NCBI GenBank assembly: GCA_002269645.1
Contig: NIVC01000850.1
Coordinates: forward strand, 248,001 to 312,000
From: Macrostomum lignano
Taxonomy: Eukaryota
Reading direction: 5' to 3'
DNA length: 64,000 bases
The translations under genes were made by a program, and so were the position numbers. The number at the start of each line of letters is the position of its first letter. Positions within the stretch are counted from its first letter, which is position 1. Positions 28,901 through 40,900 of this stretch are shown piece by piece. The notes beneath the pieces are model-generated. The model had not been told where the DNA came from, ran no database searches, and saw only the letters and a list, made by a program, of their open reading frames with translations.

Positions 28901-31900
28901 CCTAGAAGGGATTCCAACAAAATCTAGACGAGGGTTGGACTAAGCCTTTGAACTCTTGGACTCGGGATAGCATGCAGTCTAAAAATAGAAAACCAGCGGG
29001 TTTCCCTTGCCCCTTATGCATCTTCTCTTACCCATGGCTATTTTTAGCTCTCACTCCACGACAAAATGTACATATAAGCTTGGCAGTGGCACCCCACATT
29101 AATCAATATTCTCTGCCACTACGTTAATGTACACTCTAGGCGCGTGGACTATAAAATCGACTCCCCTTTTTAGGCACGCACGAGCCGCACCCCAAAAAAT
29201 TCTCTGCCCTTCGTCACTGTACACACAATGTACAGCCTAAAGCATAAAGATCGACTACTCCCTTCCCTCTTATCCCCTACCCCCTTAACAATTTATTCGT
29301 GAAATTAAATGATTTTCTCTGCGTCTCTTGTTAATATAGACTCGACCCAGGAGGGGGGCTTCAGGAGGGCCGTTGCTCTGGCGCGGTGCTATCACGTGCC
29401 AGCGGCCCAGGCTTGATTCCAAGTGTAGTCACATTAATTTGAGGCTAAATTGGAATCTCGGCTTGGCTCTGCTCGTGCAATTAACGGCCTTAGGAGAGGA
29501 CCAACCCCCAGGCCCCAAGGCACAGTGAAGTGTACATGCCTAACGAACGATAGATAAAGTTAGGGCTGCTGTACACTCCTGTGTGAGTGTGTGCCTGTGC
29601 GCACACAGCCTCCCGTCGCTAATAAAAAAACAAAAAAGTACCTTCAGTTTTCATCATTAAGAACTCAATGTTATCAAATAACAACAGTAATTGTTTTGCA
29701 GTTTTAAATTAATCATTTTAATCGCGCGTCTGTTCCTACTTTTTATGTCTACGAGTTATATGCAGTTTTTAGTTTATTTAATCTCAAATTAAAATTTTTT
29801 GATAACCAATTTTAGGCGAAAGGAATAGAACCGGTGAGAAACATACAATATGATAGTTGATATTGTATAATTTTCCATATATATTTTCTTACTAGTGTAT
29901 ATTCTGTTCTATTGAAGTGTGTGTGCATTCGTATCTGCATCATCATCAACCCGAGATGTTGTTTAGAGTCCATTGTTGGATTCTTCACTGATGCTTCAAT
30001 GCACTTTTTATGAATGAGATCCCCTACTCTTCTCCAAAAACCTGAGAATGCTTGTATTTTGAGTTGAAACACTTATTTGGATTCAGTATGCTGCTTAGCA
30101 TCTTTGTCTGTAAGTTTGGATTTTTTGTTTCTGTTGCACAGAGTACTTATTTATCTATAAGCATTTATTACATTTATTTATTTAACAATTGATCTCTTCT
30201 GCTTATAGAAGCTTGCTTTATTCGCTATTGAATATATTCTTTTAATCCTTACAATCTATCATCTATCTTATAGGCAGTTGGCCTCTTAACTTAATAAAGT
30301 TGCTTCTGTTAGTATAAAATTTTATGGTCTATCTAATGTATTGACATTTTCTGTCTATGTATGTCTGTCTGTCTGTCTGTCTGTCTGTCTGTCTGTGTTA
30401 GTGTATGTGTGTTTGCGTAGACTCTCCGTCGGTTTAAAAGCCTCGTTAGCGGGACCTTTCGATTACATGGACCCTTTAAGTGGACCACTTTAAATTTCCT
30501 TGATGGGAAGTACAGAGAGGGTTTATCTTGACTGACTGCATAGTCTGAAAGGCAGCCATTACTGTGGCCAAAGTCCCTCTACTTAAAGTAGTTTAGATTT
30601 TAAGTATTGAGTATTTTAGTTTACAAGGACCTTTAACACAGTCCACCCAAACCACATCGCTGAGGTCCACCTAACCCGAAAACAGACAAATTTCACACAT
30701 ACATAGTGTATGTTTTGTTTGTATGAAAACTTATTTTTTTATGATATAGCTCTTTAAAATGCGTGTTTAAGCACATTGGGGCATTTTTGAGTTGCAGAAG
30801 CAAGCTTTCTAAACAGGCCGAAGTGATTGGAATGTAAAATAAAATTGAAGTTTCTGCTACAAACGAAGCTCCGATGTAGCCCATAATAACTAAAAATTCA
30901 CGAGATGGTTTTATTTATTACTTGTGGTTTCTGAAACAAAACTGTTCACTAATATTCCTGTCGCTATCATGCTTGGAATAAATGCTTCATCAAGTGTTGA
31001 TTTTAGAGAACCTAGATTGAAGGCTATGCATGCTATGCATTTCTCATGCTGCATTTGCAGCATTGCTTAATTTAAGGAGACATAAAGACAAGAGCCTTGC
31101 TTACAGCACGGACTCCTAAAATAGTTTGTGTGCTTTATATTCAAACGTTTACAGCTTCGGCAACCGATAGGATAGGGCTGAATAATGAAACTTTAAAAGC
31201 CGAACCATCCTGACTGAGGTCCAAGCAAACCCCAAAGCTCATCAGCCAATCCTGTGCTTAAACGGACAGTCAAGAATGGGGTGGTTTAACTTTCATTCCT
31301 TACTGTCCGTCCGTTTGAACGTTGGTCATTTCCCTCTCTCCCTCCGAAGGGCTCTTATTGGTCTGTAGCTGGCTTAATCATCAAGGTCGAGGGTCTGAAA
31401 TAGAGGGTCAACGTAAACATCTTCCTAATCACAAAAACAGACCAATTTCCAACCTCAAACAAGACTTCAACTTGAATTAGTTGGCCTCACAAGTTGGTTC
31501 TGCCAACTGGTTGTCCTTAACACGCCAGCATGCAGAAAAAAAAGCCCCAAGCTAGTAGGCGTTTCTACGTTGAAAGGATTATCAAGTGCACGAAAAAGAA
31601 GCTCTACATAAAGTGGAAAGGATATTCTAGGTGAGTTTCAAAAGATTTATTCATCACTGCACTCTATTTATTATATATACTAAGAGTTGTTTCCATACGG
31701 CCATATCGGTTCGGCTAATAAACAGTGCTTCCATATTTTAGCAATCAAAATTCTTGGGAGCCACGAAGCAACATACCAACAAGTGTGATTCAAAGTCTGC
31801 ATTCATCTTGCGGTAAGAATTTTTAGTTATCACGTGTAATAATCTTATTAAATAATTGACCGTCTAACTTCTGTGTCAGAAAAAAATGACAATCTAACTC

Positions 31901-37900: not shown

Positions 37901-40900
37901 GACCGAAAACTGAAGCAGGTGCATGTCAAGTGGTCAGAAGAGGAAGACGCAGCGTTCAAACGTGTTTTCGACAGAATGCTTGAAGAATCAGGTGGAAAAG
38001 TTCCTGGGTTAAATGCGCTGCTTAGGCTGAAGCAAGATGAGCCAGCCCTGAAAGATCGATCTGTTCTGAAGCTTAAAAGCAAGTTTTTTAACGAAATGCA
38101 GAAACTTAAGAAATAGCTGGTTACGAGTATGCTTAAGTCTCCAACCTATAATGGTGCTCTTTCCTTGCTGCACTGAACTCACGTTTTGTTCAATGATACA
38201 TGTATTTTCTCTAACCTTATAATTAGTGGCTGAGATTGATTAAATATTATGTCACTTCGATAGCGAAAGCAACTTTAGATTTGCAAGACACAAAGTAGCT
38301 TGCCATAAAAATTTCTGTGCCAAAATATCCGAATTTTTTTTAATCTCTCTCCAAAATTTGATGAATACATTCATTCATCATTATAAATTCATTCAAATTT
38401 TAGCCTACCGAAGTGACATGGAGGCAGTTAGCCCCGAAAATTTTCCTATTATTCAGTTGTCGCGGTATACCGCACTATTTTCACAATTGATTTGTAACGC
38501 TTCTCCCACGTTTCTATAAACTGTGAATTTAAACTATAAATGCATCTAAAAACTTTGGCTTGGGCTGGCTTGTTGAATGTCAAAACTGCAGTATTTTTTG
38601 CACTGCACGTCTAAAAAATCGAAAAACTTCCAATTATTCTCTCTTGTTTAAGTTTTGCTTTGCAGTTTAGTAATTTTTGTCAAATTTAGCATTTTACCAC
38701 CTTTATGTCATCATATTTGATGAGTGTTAATCATTTATAGTTATAGCTCGTAGCTCGTATGATCCAAATGTATTTGCGGTACCTTTACAATAATTACTCA
38801 CTCAGTCCTACATCGCTAAATTTTTTAAACAAATAATACAAATAAAAATTTTAACATCGCTTTCATGCTTTACAGGAAAACTTGAACAGCAGTTCAGAAC
38901 AATAACTATCGACTGTTAAAAATCTTTGTTGCTCTAGATTTTTATATTGGTCCACGTACACCATCATGTTCTTAAAGGTCCGTTTAAACCTGGTCTACCT
39001 AACAACATAGTTCGAATAGTTTAATTTACTCGAATTGAAGACCTTTTGAAATTAAAAAGGCAACAGTATTTTCCAAGCGTCTCAAATTAAGCTAGTTCCC
39101 CGATTTTCTAACCATAACTAATTGGTCCACCTAACGCATTGTCAGAACAACGGTCTATGTAACCACACATACACTAGTATGTCTGTCTGTCTGTCTGTCT
39201 GTCTGTCTCTTCTCTATGTCTGTCTGTCTGTCTATCTGTCTGTCTGTCTGTCTGTCTGTCTGTCTGTCTGTCTGTCTGTCTGTCTGTCTGTCTGTCTGTC
39301 TGTCTGTCTGTCTGTCTGTCTGTCTGTCTGTCTGTCTGTCTGTCTGTCTGTCTGTCTGTCTGTGTCTGTCTGTCTGTCTGTCTGTCTGTCTGTCTGTCTG
39401 TCTCTGTCTGTGTCTGTCTGTCTGTGTCTGTCTGTCTGTCTGTCTGTGTCTGTCTGTCTGTCTGTCTGTGTCTGTCTGTCTGTCTGTCTGTTTGTTTGTT
39501 TGTCTGTATGTTTGTCTGTCTGTTCTGGTGTGTGCCTGTGTCTGTGTGGTGTCTAGTGTCAACTAGTAAACAGGCAAACTAGTAAATTGCATATAAGCTT
39601 AATGATTTCGCTTTCCTACTGCCTATCGAATAGACCGAGGCACAAATCCCAAACCATTGTACCGCCTCGCACAACAGTGCTTTGCTTGTTTTATGCAATC
39701 GACTTTGCATTTGTACTGCGCACATTCTCTGCTTATTTTAACTCAAACGCAGGGTCTGAGTTGCAGCTCCGGATAGGTAACCCATTTTATCACCGTACTG
39801 AAGCTATGATTAATTTAATAGACGAAGGAACATTGATGTTAATACATGAATTCACTGCTATGTTTAAGGCTCGTGTGTTATTATATATCTTATTCCTTTG
39901 CTAAGCTACTGTCAACATAAATTTACTAAAGATTTATCAAGAAATTGTACTCTGATAATTGCCATTTCAATTATTGTCAATAATTAATTTATTTTGGCGG
40001 CTTCCTTTGATGTCCTCACAATTACCTCGGCAGCTTCCTTTGATGTCCTCACAATTACCTCGGCGGCTTCCTTTGATGTCCTCACAATTACCTCGGCAGC
40101 TTCCTTTGATGTCCTCACAATTAATTTGGCGGCTTCCTTTGATGTCCTCACAATTACTTTGGCGGCTTCCTTTGATGTCCTCATAATTACCTCGGCAGCT
40201 TCCTTTGATGTCCTCACAATTACTTTGGCGGCTTCCTTTGATGTTCTCACAATTACCTCGGCAGCTTCATTTGATGTCCTCACAATTTACCTCGGCAGCT
40301 TCCTTTGATGTCCTCACAATTACCTCGGCGGCTTCCTTTGATGTCCTCACAATTACCTCGGGGGCTTCCTTTGATGTCCTCACAATTACCTCGGCGGCTT
40401 CTTTTGATGTCCTCACAATTACTTTGGCGGCTTCCTTTGATGTCCTCACAATTAATTTGGCGGCTTCCTTTGATGTCCTCACAATTACTTTGGCGGCTTC
40501 CTTTGATGTCCTCACAATTACTTTGGCGGCTTCCTTTGATGTTCTCACAATTACCTCGGCAGCTTCATTTGATGTCCTCACAATTTACCTCGGCAGCTTC
40601 CTTTGATGTCCTCACAATTACCTCGGCGGCTTCCTTTGATGTCCTCACAATTACCTCGGGGGCTTCCTTTGATGTCCTCACAATTACCTCGGCGGCTTCT
40701 TTTGATGTCCTCACAATTACTTTGGCGGCTTCCTTTGATGTCCTCACAATTACTTTGGCGGCTTCCTTTGATGTCCTCACAATTAGTGGTATCTCGGCAG
40801 CTTCCTTTGATGTTCTCATGATTAAATTTGCGACTTCTTTTGATGTTCTCAAAATCATACTGGCATGGCGGCTTCCTTTGATGTTCACAGCTTGTGTGGT

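Follow-up and report, generated by a model that had tools for sequence, protein, structure and literature searches.

The element and its gene

The window analysed here, a 64-kb stretch of contig NIVC01000850.1 from the Macrostomum lignano assembly Mlig_3_7 (window 29400-40200 is 100% identical to locus L001), contains an 8.8-kb element at 30399-39176 with a (TCTG)n microsatellite on either flank and a single gene for a predicted tyrosine recombinase. The element is very likely a Crypton-type DNA transposon that is autonomous and was active recently in M. lignano, and the CryptonV group is its most likely placement. The coordinates of its features are collected in Table 1.

The recombinase gene comprises six exons (31530-31630, 31742-31812, 31935-31975, 33800-34186, 34864-35656 and 35955-38116), whose spliced product is exactly the GenBank protein PAA76011.1 (P0001, 1184 amino acids). 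All exon borders follow the GT-AG rule and the frame is open throughout, in agreement with a preliminary reading of the letters alone (hereafter the sequence-only reading), which had proposed one intact spliced open reading frame (ORF). The GenBank model leaves out an extra in-frame 387-nt exon, 32488-32874, with which the protein would reach 1313 amino acids. The low-complexity exons of that reading are real as well, being three tandem copies of one in-frame 387-nt exon, with an intron after each that contains an 83-85-bp minisatellite.

The GenBank models of this assembly come from a transcriptome guided by RNA sequencing, from which transcripts overlapping annotated repeats had been removed (PMC5730564). 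The splice between the chromodomain exons and the recombinase exon, whose absence had been named beforehand as grounds for abandoning the sequence-only reading, is present in this model and therefore has transcript support. Since the model was kept despite the removal of repeats, the repeat annotation of the time evidently missed the element. No reverse transcriptase ORF is present in the ORF list for 30300-39300, nor is there room for one in the element; besides the recombinase gene, the ORFs of that interval reach at most 112 amino acids and are antisense or other frames of the gene's exons or lie in repeats. The earlier statement that the element lacks a reverse transcriptase thus holds.

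The tyrosine recombinase

The protein is laid out as an HP1-like chromodomain, repeated disordered modules, two C2HC fingers and then the tyrosine recombinase. The ORF of the last exon (715 amino acids) has 46 strong homologues across animals, and residues R321, K370, R442, H468 and Y477 are each at least 90% conserved in the homologue alignments. One homologue (P0032) exceeds the threshold of the Pfam Phage_integrase profile (PF00589; 27.8 vs 27.1 bits, profile positions 51-168 of 172). A fold search with a 524-residue model gave a marginal XerA match alone, for which reason the catalytic domain was remodelled separately. The AlphaFold model of this domain (residues 285-505) reached a predicted local distance difference test score (pLDDT) of 85.7, and its top seven Foldseek matches in the PDB are all XerH or XerA, with probabilities of 0.99-0.60. 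On its homologues, conserved residues and predicted fold, the protein is accepted as a tyrosine recombinase, and the R-K-R-H-Y signature of the sequence-only reading stands on the same grounds, the ORF itself having no Pfam match.

Chromodomain, zinc fingers and C-terminal tail

The chromodomain is recognised by Pfam PF00385 at 35.8 bits in the spliced exons 1-2 and at 29.2 bits in the full protein (cut-off 25.1), and the best solved-structure matches of these exons are HP1 chromodomains (1.8e-6). Residues F12, W29 and Y32 align with aromatic positions of HP1 chromodomains, columns that we take to be those of the aromatic cage. The domain would probably add a bias or a tether towards chromatin marked by methyl-lysine.

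The two zinc-finger-like motifs that had been noticed are confirmed as C-x2-C...H-x3/4-C (C2HC) fingers, invariant across homologues. The C-terminal tail has a conserved W-x3-E...W pattern, its W-x3-E domain beginning at 37925. The Myb/SANT-like assignment once given to this tail was rejected, as no Pfam match appeared at E ≤1, nor any PDB match at E ≤10.

Element ends

The imperfect inverted repeats described by the sequence-only reading do bound the 8.8-kb unit, and the (TCTG)n sequence does continue beyond both of them. The arms measure 24 nt each and are 88% complementary, with the outer 13 bp perfect. The outer 13-mer, TAGTGTATGTGTG, has two occurrences in the 64 kb, which are exactly both element ends in inverted orientation, against 0.04 expected by chance. 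The left and right ends align further inward, up to a subterminal CGTTAG-NN-GGACC site located about 45 bp from each tip. Two direct repeats are found at both junctions, namely TAGT (4 bp) and TGTCTGT (7 bp, within the flank).

The TA reported on each side is present at both outer edges; it falls within the perfect inverted repeat and therefore need not be a target-site duplication. Inverted repeats edged by TA would also be produced if a Tc1/mariner-type DDE transposase acted in trans on these ends and duplicated TA, the recombinase gene being cargo or a fusion partner. A composite of this kind is documented: MarCry-1_FO of Fusarium joins Mariner and Crypton parts, has 16-bp repeats with TA duplicated, and likewise holds a recombinase gene within inverted repeats with TA at the edges (PMC3212892). 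However, MarCry-1_FO possesses its own DDE transposase, which explains its ends, whereas the M. lignano element has no DDE ORF and sits in a microsatellite. Moreover, pure (TCTG)n contains no TA, and the bases beyond the TA are identical in three copies of the element, so that a duplication would need the same ~20-bp target at three loci. The right end of a second family, described below, carries GA rather than TA, and a target confined to microsatellites is what site-specific recombination would give, unlike mariner insertion. Mariner mobilisation is thus highly improbable and was rejected together with the duplication reading of TA, which is better understood as part of the inverted repeat.

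Dispersed copies and target choice

Paralogues from the same protein cluster lie on two other M. lignano contigs, where the element occupies L002 1770-17655 (15.9 kb) and L003 8873-47284 (38.4 kb). The unique 5' and 3' parts of these copies are 99.1-99.9% identical to those of the window copy. All three copies are base-identical at both junctions and lie inside (TCTG)n, reading TCTGTGT/TAGTGTATGTGTG...CACACATACACTA/GTATGTCTG, where slashes mark the element borders. Copies without these termini or TCTG flanks had been named in advance as an outcome that would speak against the sequence-only reading; L002 and L003 have both. Including the second family, 4/4 examined M. lignano insertions are in (TCTG)n. 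Since TCTG arrays make up just 1.9% of the window outside the element, repeated insertion there by chance is very unlikely.

The copies differ in size through their internal module number: the window copy has 2 full 387-nt module exons, L002 no fewer than 8 and L003 24, each module measuring 1.3 kb, and these differences are given as assembled and may partly be an assembly artefact. The exon that follows the modules (34864-35656 in the window) opens with the start of the module sequence in each copy. L003 also has a duplicated chromodomain exon pair, the second at 16052.

A different account of these flanks would make (TCTG)n something other than the target, the element having brought the arrays along or seeded them, or segmental duplication of a host gene having spread the copies. 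Extensive recent duplication is known in M. lignano (PMC5730564), the bases directly outside the repeat are the same in all copies, and no empty site was recovered; the search for one among host-gene paralogues (protein searches with the exons of the ANKAR-like host gene) returned no M. lignano protein. Nevertheless, array lengths and interruption patterns are locus-specific on both sides, homology between copies ends within the array, and the sequence beyond is unrelated among loci. In addition, the window has two (TCTG)n arrays with no element in them, 46332-46376 and 59854-60461, and the divergent second family likewise lies in an array, with just 3.5 units on one side. This account is consequently improbable. 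Judged from the compared loci, the element is a recently mobile DNA transposon, site-specific for (TCTG)n, and the microsatellite integration put forward by the sequence-only reading is borne out by three copies of one family plus the sister family.

That sister family (family 2) is represented by protein P0003, 48% identical, in an element spanning ~1910-18199 of locus L004. This element also lies within (GTCT)n, of which ~100 units precede its left end and 3.5 follow its right end. Its ends, CTGTCTGTGTGTTTACGTGGAC... and ...GTCCCGCTAAACACACAGACAG, are alignable with the left and right ends of family 1, and the two families share distinct subterminal sites, AGCCTCGTTAGC-GGACC on the left and AATGCGTTA-G-TGGACC on the right. 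L004 has amplified exon-intron modules too, with a 71-bp minisatellite. A chromodomain was not detected in family 2 by tblastn or motif search. As the target is nonetheless the same, the recombinase core probably sets it, and the chromodomain would not be needed for sequence choice.

Among homologous loci of other species, the flanks of L006 and L007 have no microsatellite, and L008 has (AC)n on both sides, adjoining an unrelated fish transposon end, and is uninformative on the target. In L005 (2499-5059) and in L009 and L010 (1-7056), loci from assemblies GCA_977066305.1 and GCA_977066385.1, a degenerate (TCTG)n array of 3-7 kb precedes a multicopy 677-residue homologue, which lies ~3 kb further downstream. 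These loci do not reach the right boundary and the three may be duplicates of one another; they hint that the TCTG association is older than flatworms.

A recurrent odd interruption was observed in the (TCTG)n arrays, in which one GTCT unit is replaced by TAGT, a change needing three substitutions. It is located at window 59854-60461, at L002 ~1570 and at L004 1523-1690. TAGT is also the 4-bp repeat at both element junctions, and TAGTGTCTGTCTG agrees with the terminal repeat at 11/13 positions; the interruption is not identical to the empty site that the family-1 junctions predict. Such interruptions could be a variant preferred as target, footprints left by recombination or higher-order variation of the arrays.

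Subterminal motif and intronic arrays

The motif GGTCCACCTAAC, searched with up to 2 mismatches, has 22/22 of its window matches inside the element, where 2.4 would be expected. Its copies lie on the minus strand near the left tip and on the plus strand near the right tip, and every intronic minisatellite unit, which resembles the right subterminal site, holds one. In L004, 60/60 matches are inside the element, with the layout of the window element. BLASTN between family-1 and family-2 loci matched the microsatellite alone. The conservation of motif and layout in two families that otherwise share just short terminal and subterminal sequence argues for a protein-binding site. The repeated binding motif of the sequence-only reading is therefore real and confined to the element, its binding being a prediction.

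The element could transpose as proposed here without any integration role for the chromodomain and the intronic motif arrays, the former reflecting neutral exon capture, evasion of silencing or transcription, and the latter being unstable minisatellites. Family 2 keeps the same target with no detectable chromodomain, the N-terminal domains of the family are interchangeable (SET, FHA, BRCT, kinase), and 38% of the window is tandem repeat anyway. Against this, the chromodomain ORF is intact, retains its aromatic positions and recurs in a fish homologue, and the motif is retained in the intronic arrays of both families, which otherwise show no nucleotide similarity. We regard this more modest version as quite possible, if not the one to be preferred.

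Table 1. Features of the M. lignano element and its flanks, in window coordinates
Feature	Position	Strand	Basis or remark
Left flanking microsatellite (TGTC)9.8, target DNA	30358-30396		Tandem Repeats Finder (TRF); length and interruptions vary among copies
Left terminal inverted repeat TAGTGTATGTGTGTTTGCGTAGAC, outer 13 bp perfect	30399-30422	+	Junction same in L002 and L003; homologous to family-2 end
Two left subterminal GGTCCACCTAAC-type copies	30445-30456, 30475-30486	-	Motif search; position and orientation same in family 2
Third left GGTCCACCTAAC-type copy	30664-30675	+	Motif search
Exons 1-3; exons 1 and 2 encode the HP1-like chromodomain	31530-31975	+
Tandemly triplicated exon-intron module, in-frame 387-nt exons 32488-32874 and 33800-34186	32077-34817	+	Number varies among copies
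Minisatellites, 83-85-bp units each carrying GGTCCAGCTAAA	32077-32441, 33063-33753, 34376-34817	+	Tandem-repeat and motif searches
Exon with third module start, acidic stretch and zinc finger 1 (35548-35604)	34864-35656	+
Last exon: zinc finger 2 (36104-36163), helical N-terminal domain, tyrosine-recombinase catalytic domain, charged tail, C-terminal domain	35955-38116	+
Catalytic R321	36929	+	Homologue alignment
Catalytic K370	37076	+	Homologue alignment
Catalytic R442	37292	+	Homologue alignment
Catalytic H468	37370	+	Homologue alignment
Catalytic Y477	37397	+	Homologue alignment
Stop codon	38114-38116	+	End of last exon
Right subterminal GGTCCACCTAAC-type copies	38992-39003, 39124-39135	+	Motif search
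Right terminal inverted repeat, GTCTATGTAACCACACATACACTA on the + strand	39153-39176	-	Inverted-repeat search, 13-mer count, junction comparison
Right flanking microsatellite (TGTC)88, target DNA	39180-39523		TRF

Proposed transposition mechanism

In the proposed mechanism, the recombinase would bind at the 13-bp terminal repeats and at the GGTCCACCTAAC sites of the subterminal regions, with its zinc fingers or C-terminal domain as the probable contacts; it would then pair both ends and excise a circle using Tyr477. The circle would then recombine with a (TCTG)n array, with crossover in the few bases common to both junctions (TAGT or TGTCTGT). Joined through TAGT, the ends would form CACACATACACTAGTGTATGTGTG, a perfect 24-bp palindrome laid out as recombinase core sites classically are. 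The predicted circle junction is CACACATACAC-TAGT-GTATGTGTG, and an alternative junction would keep TGTCTGT. Recognition of the array may rest on a likeness between TGTCTGTCTG and TGTATGTGTG, the half-site at the terminus. At 8/11 positions the right flank ATGTCTGTCTG agrees with the inner half-site GTGTATGTGTG, so that the microsatellite would stand in for a binding arm. As for the end-like sites arrayed in the introns, they would probably attract or titrate the recombinase, and they may drive the unstable copy number of the modules. A circle model for Cryptons and their short terminal direct repeats have been described, and the route outlined here fits that model (PMC3212892).

Several observations weigh against a Crypton-type transposon working in this manner. 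The 715-residue ORF of the window has no direct Pfam or PDB sequence match, a profile search of the PDB with it giving weak zinc-finger matches only; the XerH and XerA matches of the catalytic-domain model have E-values of 0.014-0.13 and template modelling (TM) scores of at most 0.42; and T439 replaces the histidine of the usual H-x-x-R motif. Cryptons are usually described without terminal inverted repeats (PMC3212892), whereas this element has a 24-bp inverted repeat (13 bp perfect) that is conserved in the second family; the absence of such repeats typifies Cryptons but does not define them. Neither a circle junction nor an empty site nor an insertion polymorphism was seen, and family 2 was examined in one copy only. 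All three family-1 copies also have the same few bases immediately beyond the repeat, TGT to its left and GTA to its right, and because of these shared bases the exact ends and the crossover cannot be fixed. Finally, methyl-lysine binding by the chromodomain and its role are pure inference.

A more far-reaching interpretation would see here a self-sufficient, currently active animal integration system, in which a histone-methyl reader and a sequence-specific recombinase, joined in one protein, together pick (TCTG)n in marked chromatin, the intronic arrays serve as a device for recruitment or copy-number control, and the TAGT substitutions in arrays that are otherwise empty are footprints of repeated integration and excision. 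This extended version is doubtful. If it were true, such elements would continually rewrite microsatellites, and with the transgenesis available in M. lignano they would offer a tractable model of Crypton transposition and a candidate eukaryotic site-specific integrase.

Classification and relation to known systems

The element shows the traits of Cryptons: an R...K...R...H...Y recombinase, no other transposition enzyme and dispersed copies with common termini. As in Cryptons in general (Goodwin 2003; Kojima & Jurka 2011, PMC3212892), the recombinase is the sole enzyme, reverse transcriptase is absent, and a circle would be excised and then integrated. Either TAGT or TGTCTGT, both of which occur at each junction, could correspond to the short direct repeat that serves Cryptons as crossover substrate. 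The target differs, being a microsatellite here and a 4-6-bp site in general Cryptons. CryptonV elements are likewise DNA transposons driven by a tyrosine recombinase alone, and the passage of PMC8869645 that cites Kapitonov & Jurka (2012) describes some of their families as specific for, and inserting into, microsatellites. As far as the descriptions go, the M. lignano element is set apart from CryptonV by its flatworm host, its chromodomain N-terminus, its inverted-repeat ends with a subterminal motif, and its multi-exon gene with motif arrays in the introns. The recombinase family also has cnidarian members (Acropora, 6.5e-84; Paramuricea, 6.0e-32). It is not of the CryptonA/DUF3504 type, with no PF12012 match among 77 scanned members, and the element is not of the DIRS, Ngaro or PAT type, having no reverse transcriptase or RNase H ORF and terminal repeats of just 24 bp.

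Two further systems resemble the element in part. Chromoviruses are Ty3/gypsy retrotransposons with a chromodomain on the integrase, which presumably reads histone methylation; they also fuse the integration enzyme of a mobile element to a chromodomain, but use a DDE integrase on a retroelement, carry the chromodomain at the C-terminus and have no sequence-specific target. The recombinases of endogenous nimaviruses, specific for telomere repeats and microsatellites (PMC10871703), are eukaryotic tyrosine recombinases with a C2H2-type zinc-binding domain and specific insertion into a simple repeat, (TAACC)n. They differ in being carried by giant viral genomes instead of an 8.8-kb transposon and in using another repeat, and they were reported not to be closely related to Cryptons.

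The sequence-only reading is upheld in its essentials, an autonomous Crypton-type element with a tyrosine recombinase and a (TCTG)n target; it did not know its combination of features from the literature, and that combination is new in part. The microsatellite target is already published for CryptonV (in the cited passage of PMC8869645), and the chromodomain, zinc-finger and recombinase architecture also occurs in a pipefish protein that lacks annotation. Newer are the fusion to a chromodomain, the way the ends are built and the arrays of sites in the introns; literature searches returned nothing relevant on Cryptons with a chromodomain or SET domain, nor on Cryptons in Macrostomum, and no paper on chromodomain Cryptons was found.

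Family context and significance

The recombinase family comprises 16,463 cluster representatives at E ≤0.001. Among 42 sampled long members (plus P0001), the N-termini contain SET in 17, BRCT in 2 and a chromodomain in 1, the last being Nerophis ophidion XP_061774235.1 (1.5e-14), the pipefish protein with the architecture of the element. Other N-terminal modules in the family are SET+FHA, FHA and protein kinase (e.g. among P0013, P0022, P0028 and P0098, alignment A3). The fused-module proteins are annotated merely as 'uncharacterized protein'. The family is thus a very large, mostly unannotated animal recombinase family that repeatedly fuses chromatin modules (SET, chromo, BRCT, FHA) N-terminally, which suggests chromatin-guided integration or silencing evasion well beyond chromoviruses. 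In the databases, such recombinase genes currently pass for ordinary host genes, their proteins being labelled 'hypothetical' or 'uncharacterized'.

For twenty years the transposition of Cryptons has been a matter of inference, and observed activity was found for Chlamydomonas only, where active Cryptons were seen in mutation-accumulation lines (PMC9977147); no report of a reconstituted animal Crypton was found in the literature. The M. lignano element would be a suitable experimental substrate: its ends are clean, its predicted circle junction is a 24-bp palindrome, and its target is both simple and abundant. The gene is intact and transcribed, the copies are near-identical, and transgenesis works in the host.

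Genomic setting

The host gene lies on the + strand from ~22860 to past 59853 and encodes ankyrin plus armadillo repeats, with ANKAR as its best named relative (4.3e-37). The element sits within one of its introns, flanked by exons near 28566-28823 and 41043-41327, and is oriented like the host gene. Tandem repeats account for ~38% of the 64-kb window; dozens of distinct 14-60-bp minisatellites are distributed over positions 1-64000, chiefly in introns of the host gene, and their GC skew is locally strong. The unoccupied array at 46332-46376 is a short (TCTG)11, 7 kb downstream of the element, a potential target unused in this haplotype. A (GTCT)152 array from 59854 starts directly after the coding ORF that ends at 59853 on the + strand.

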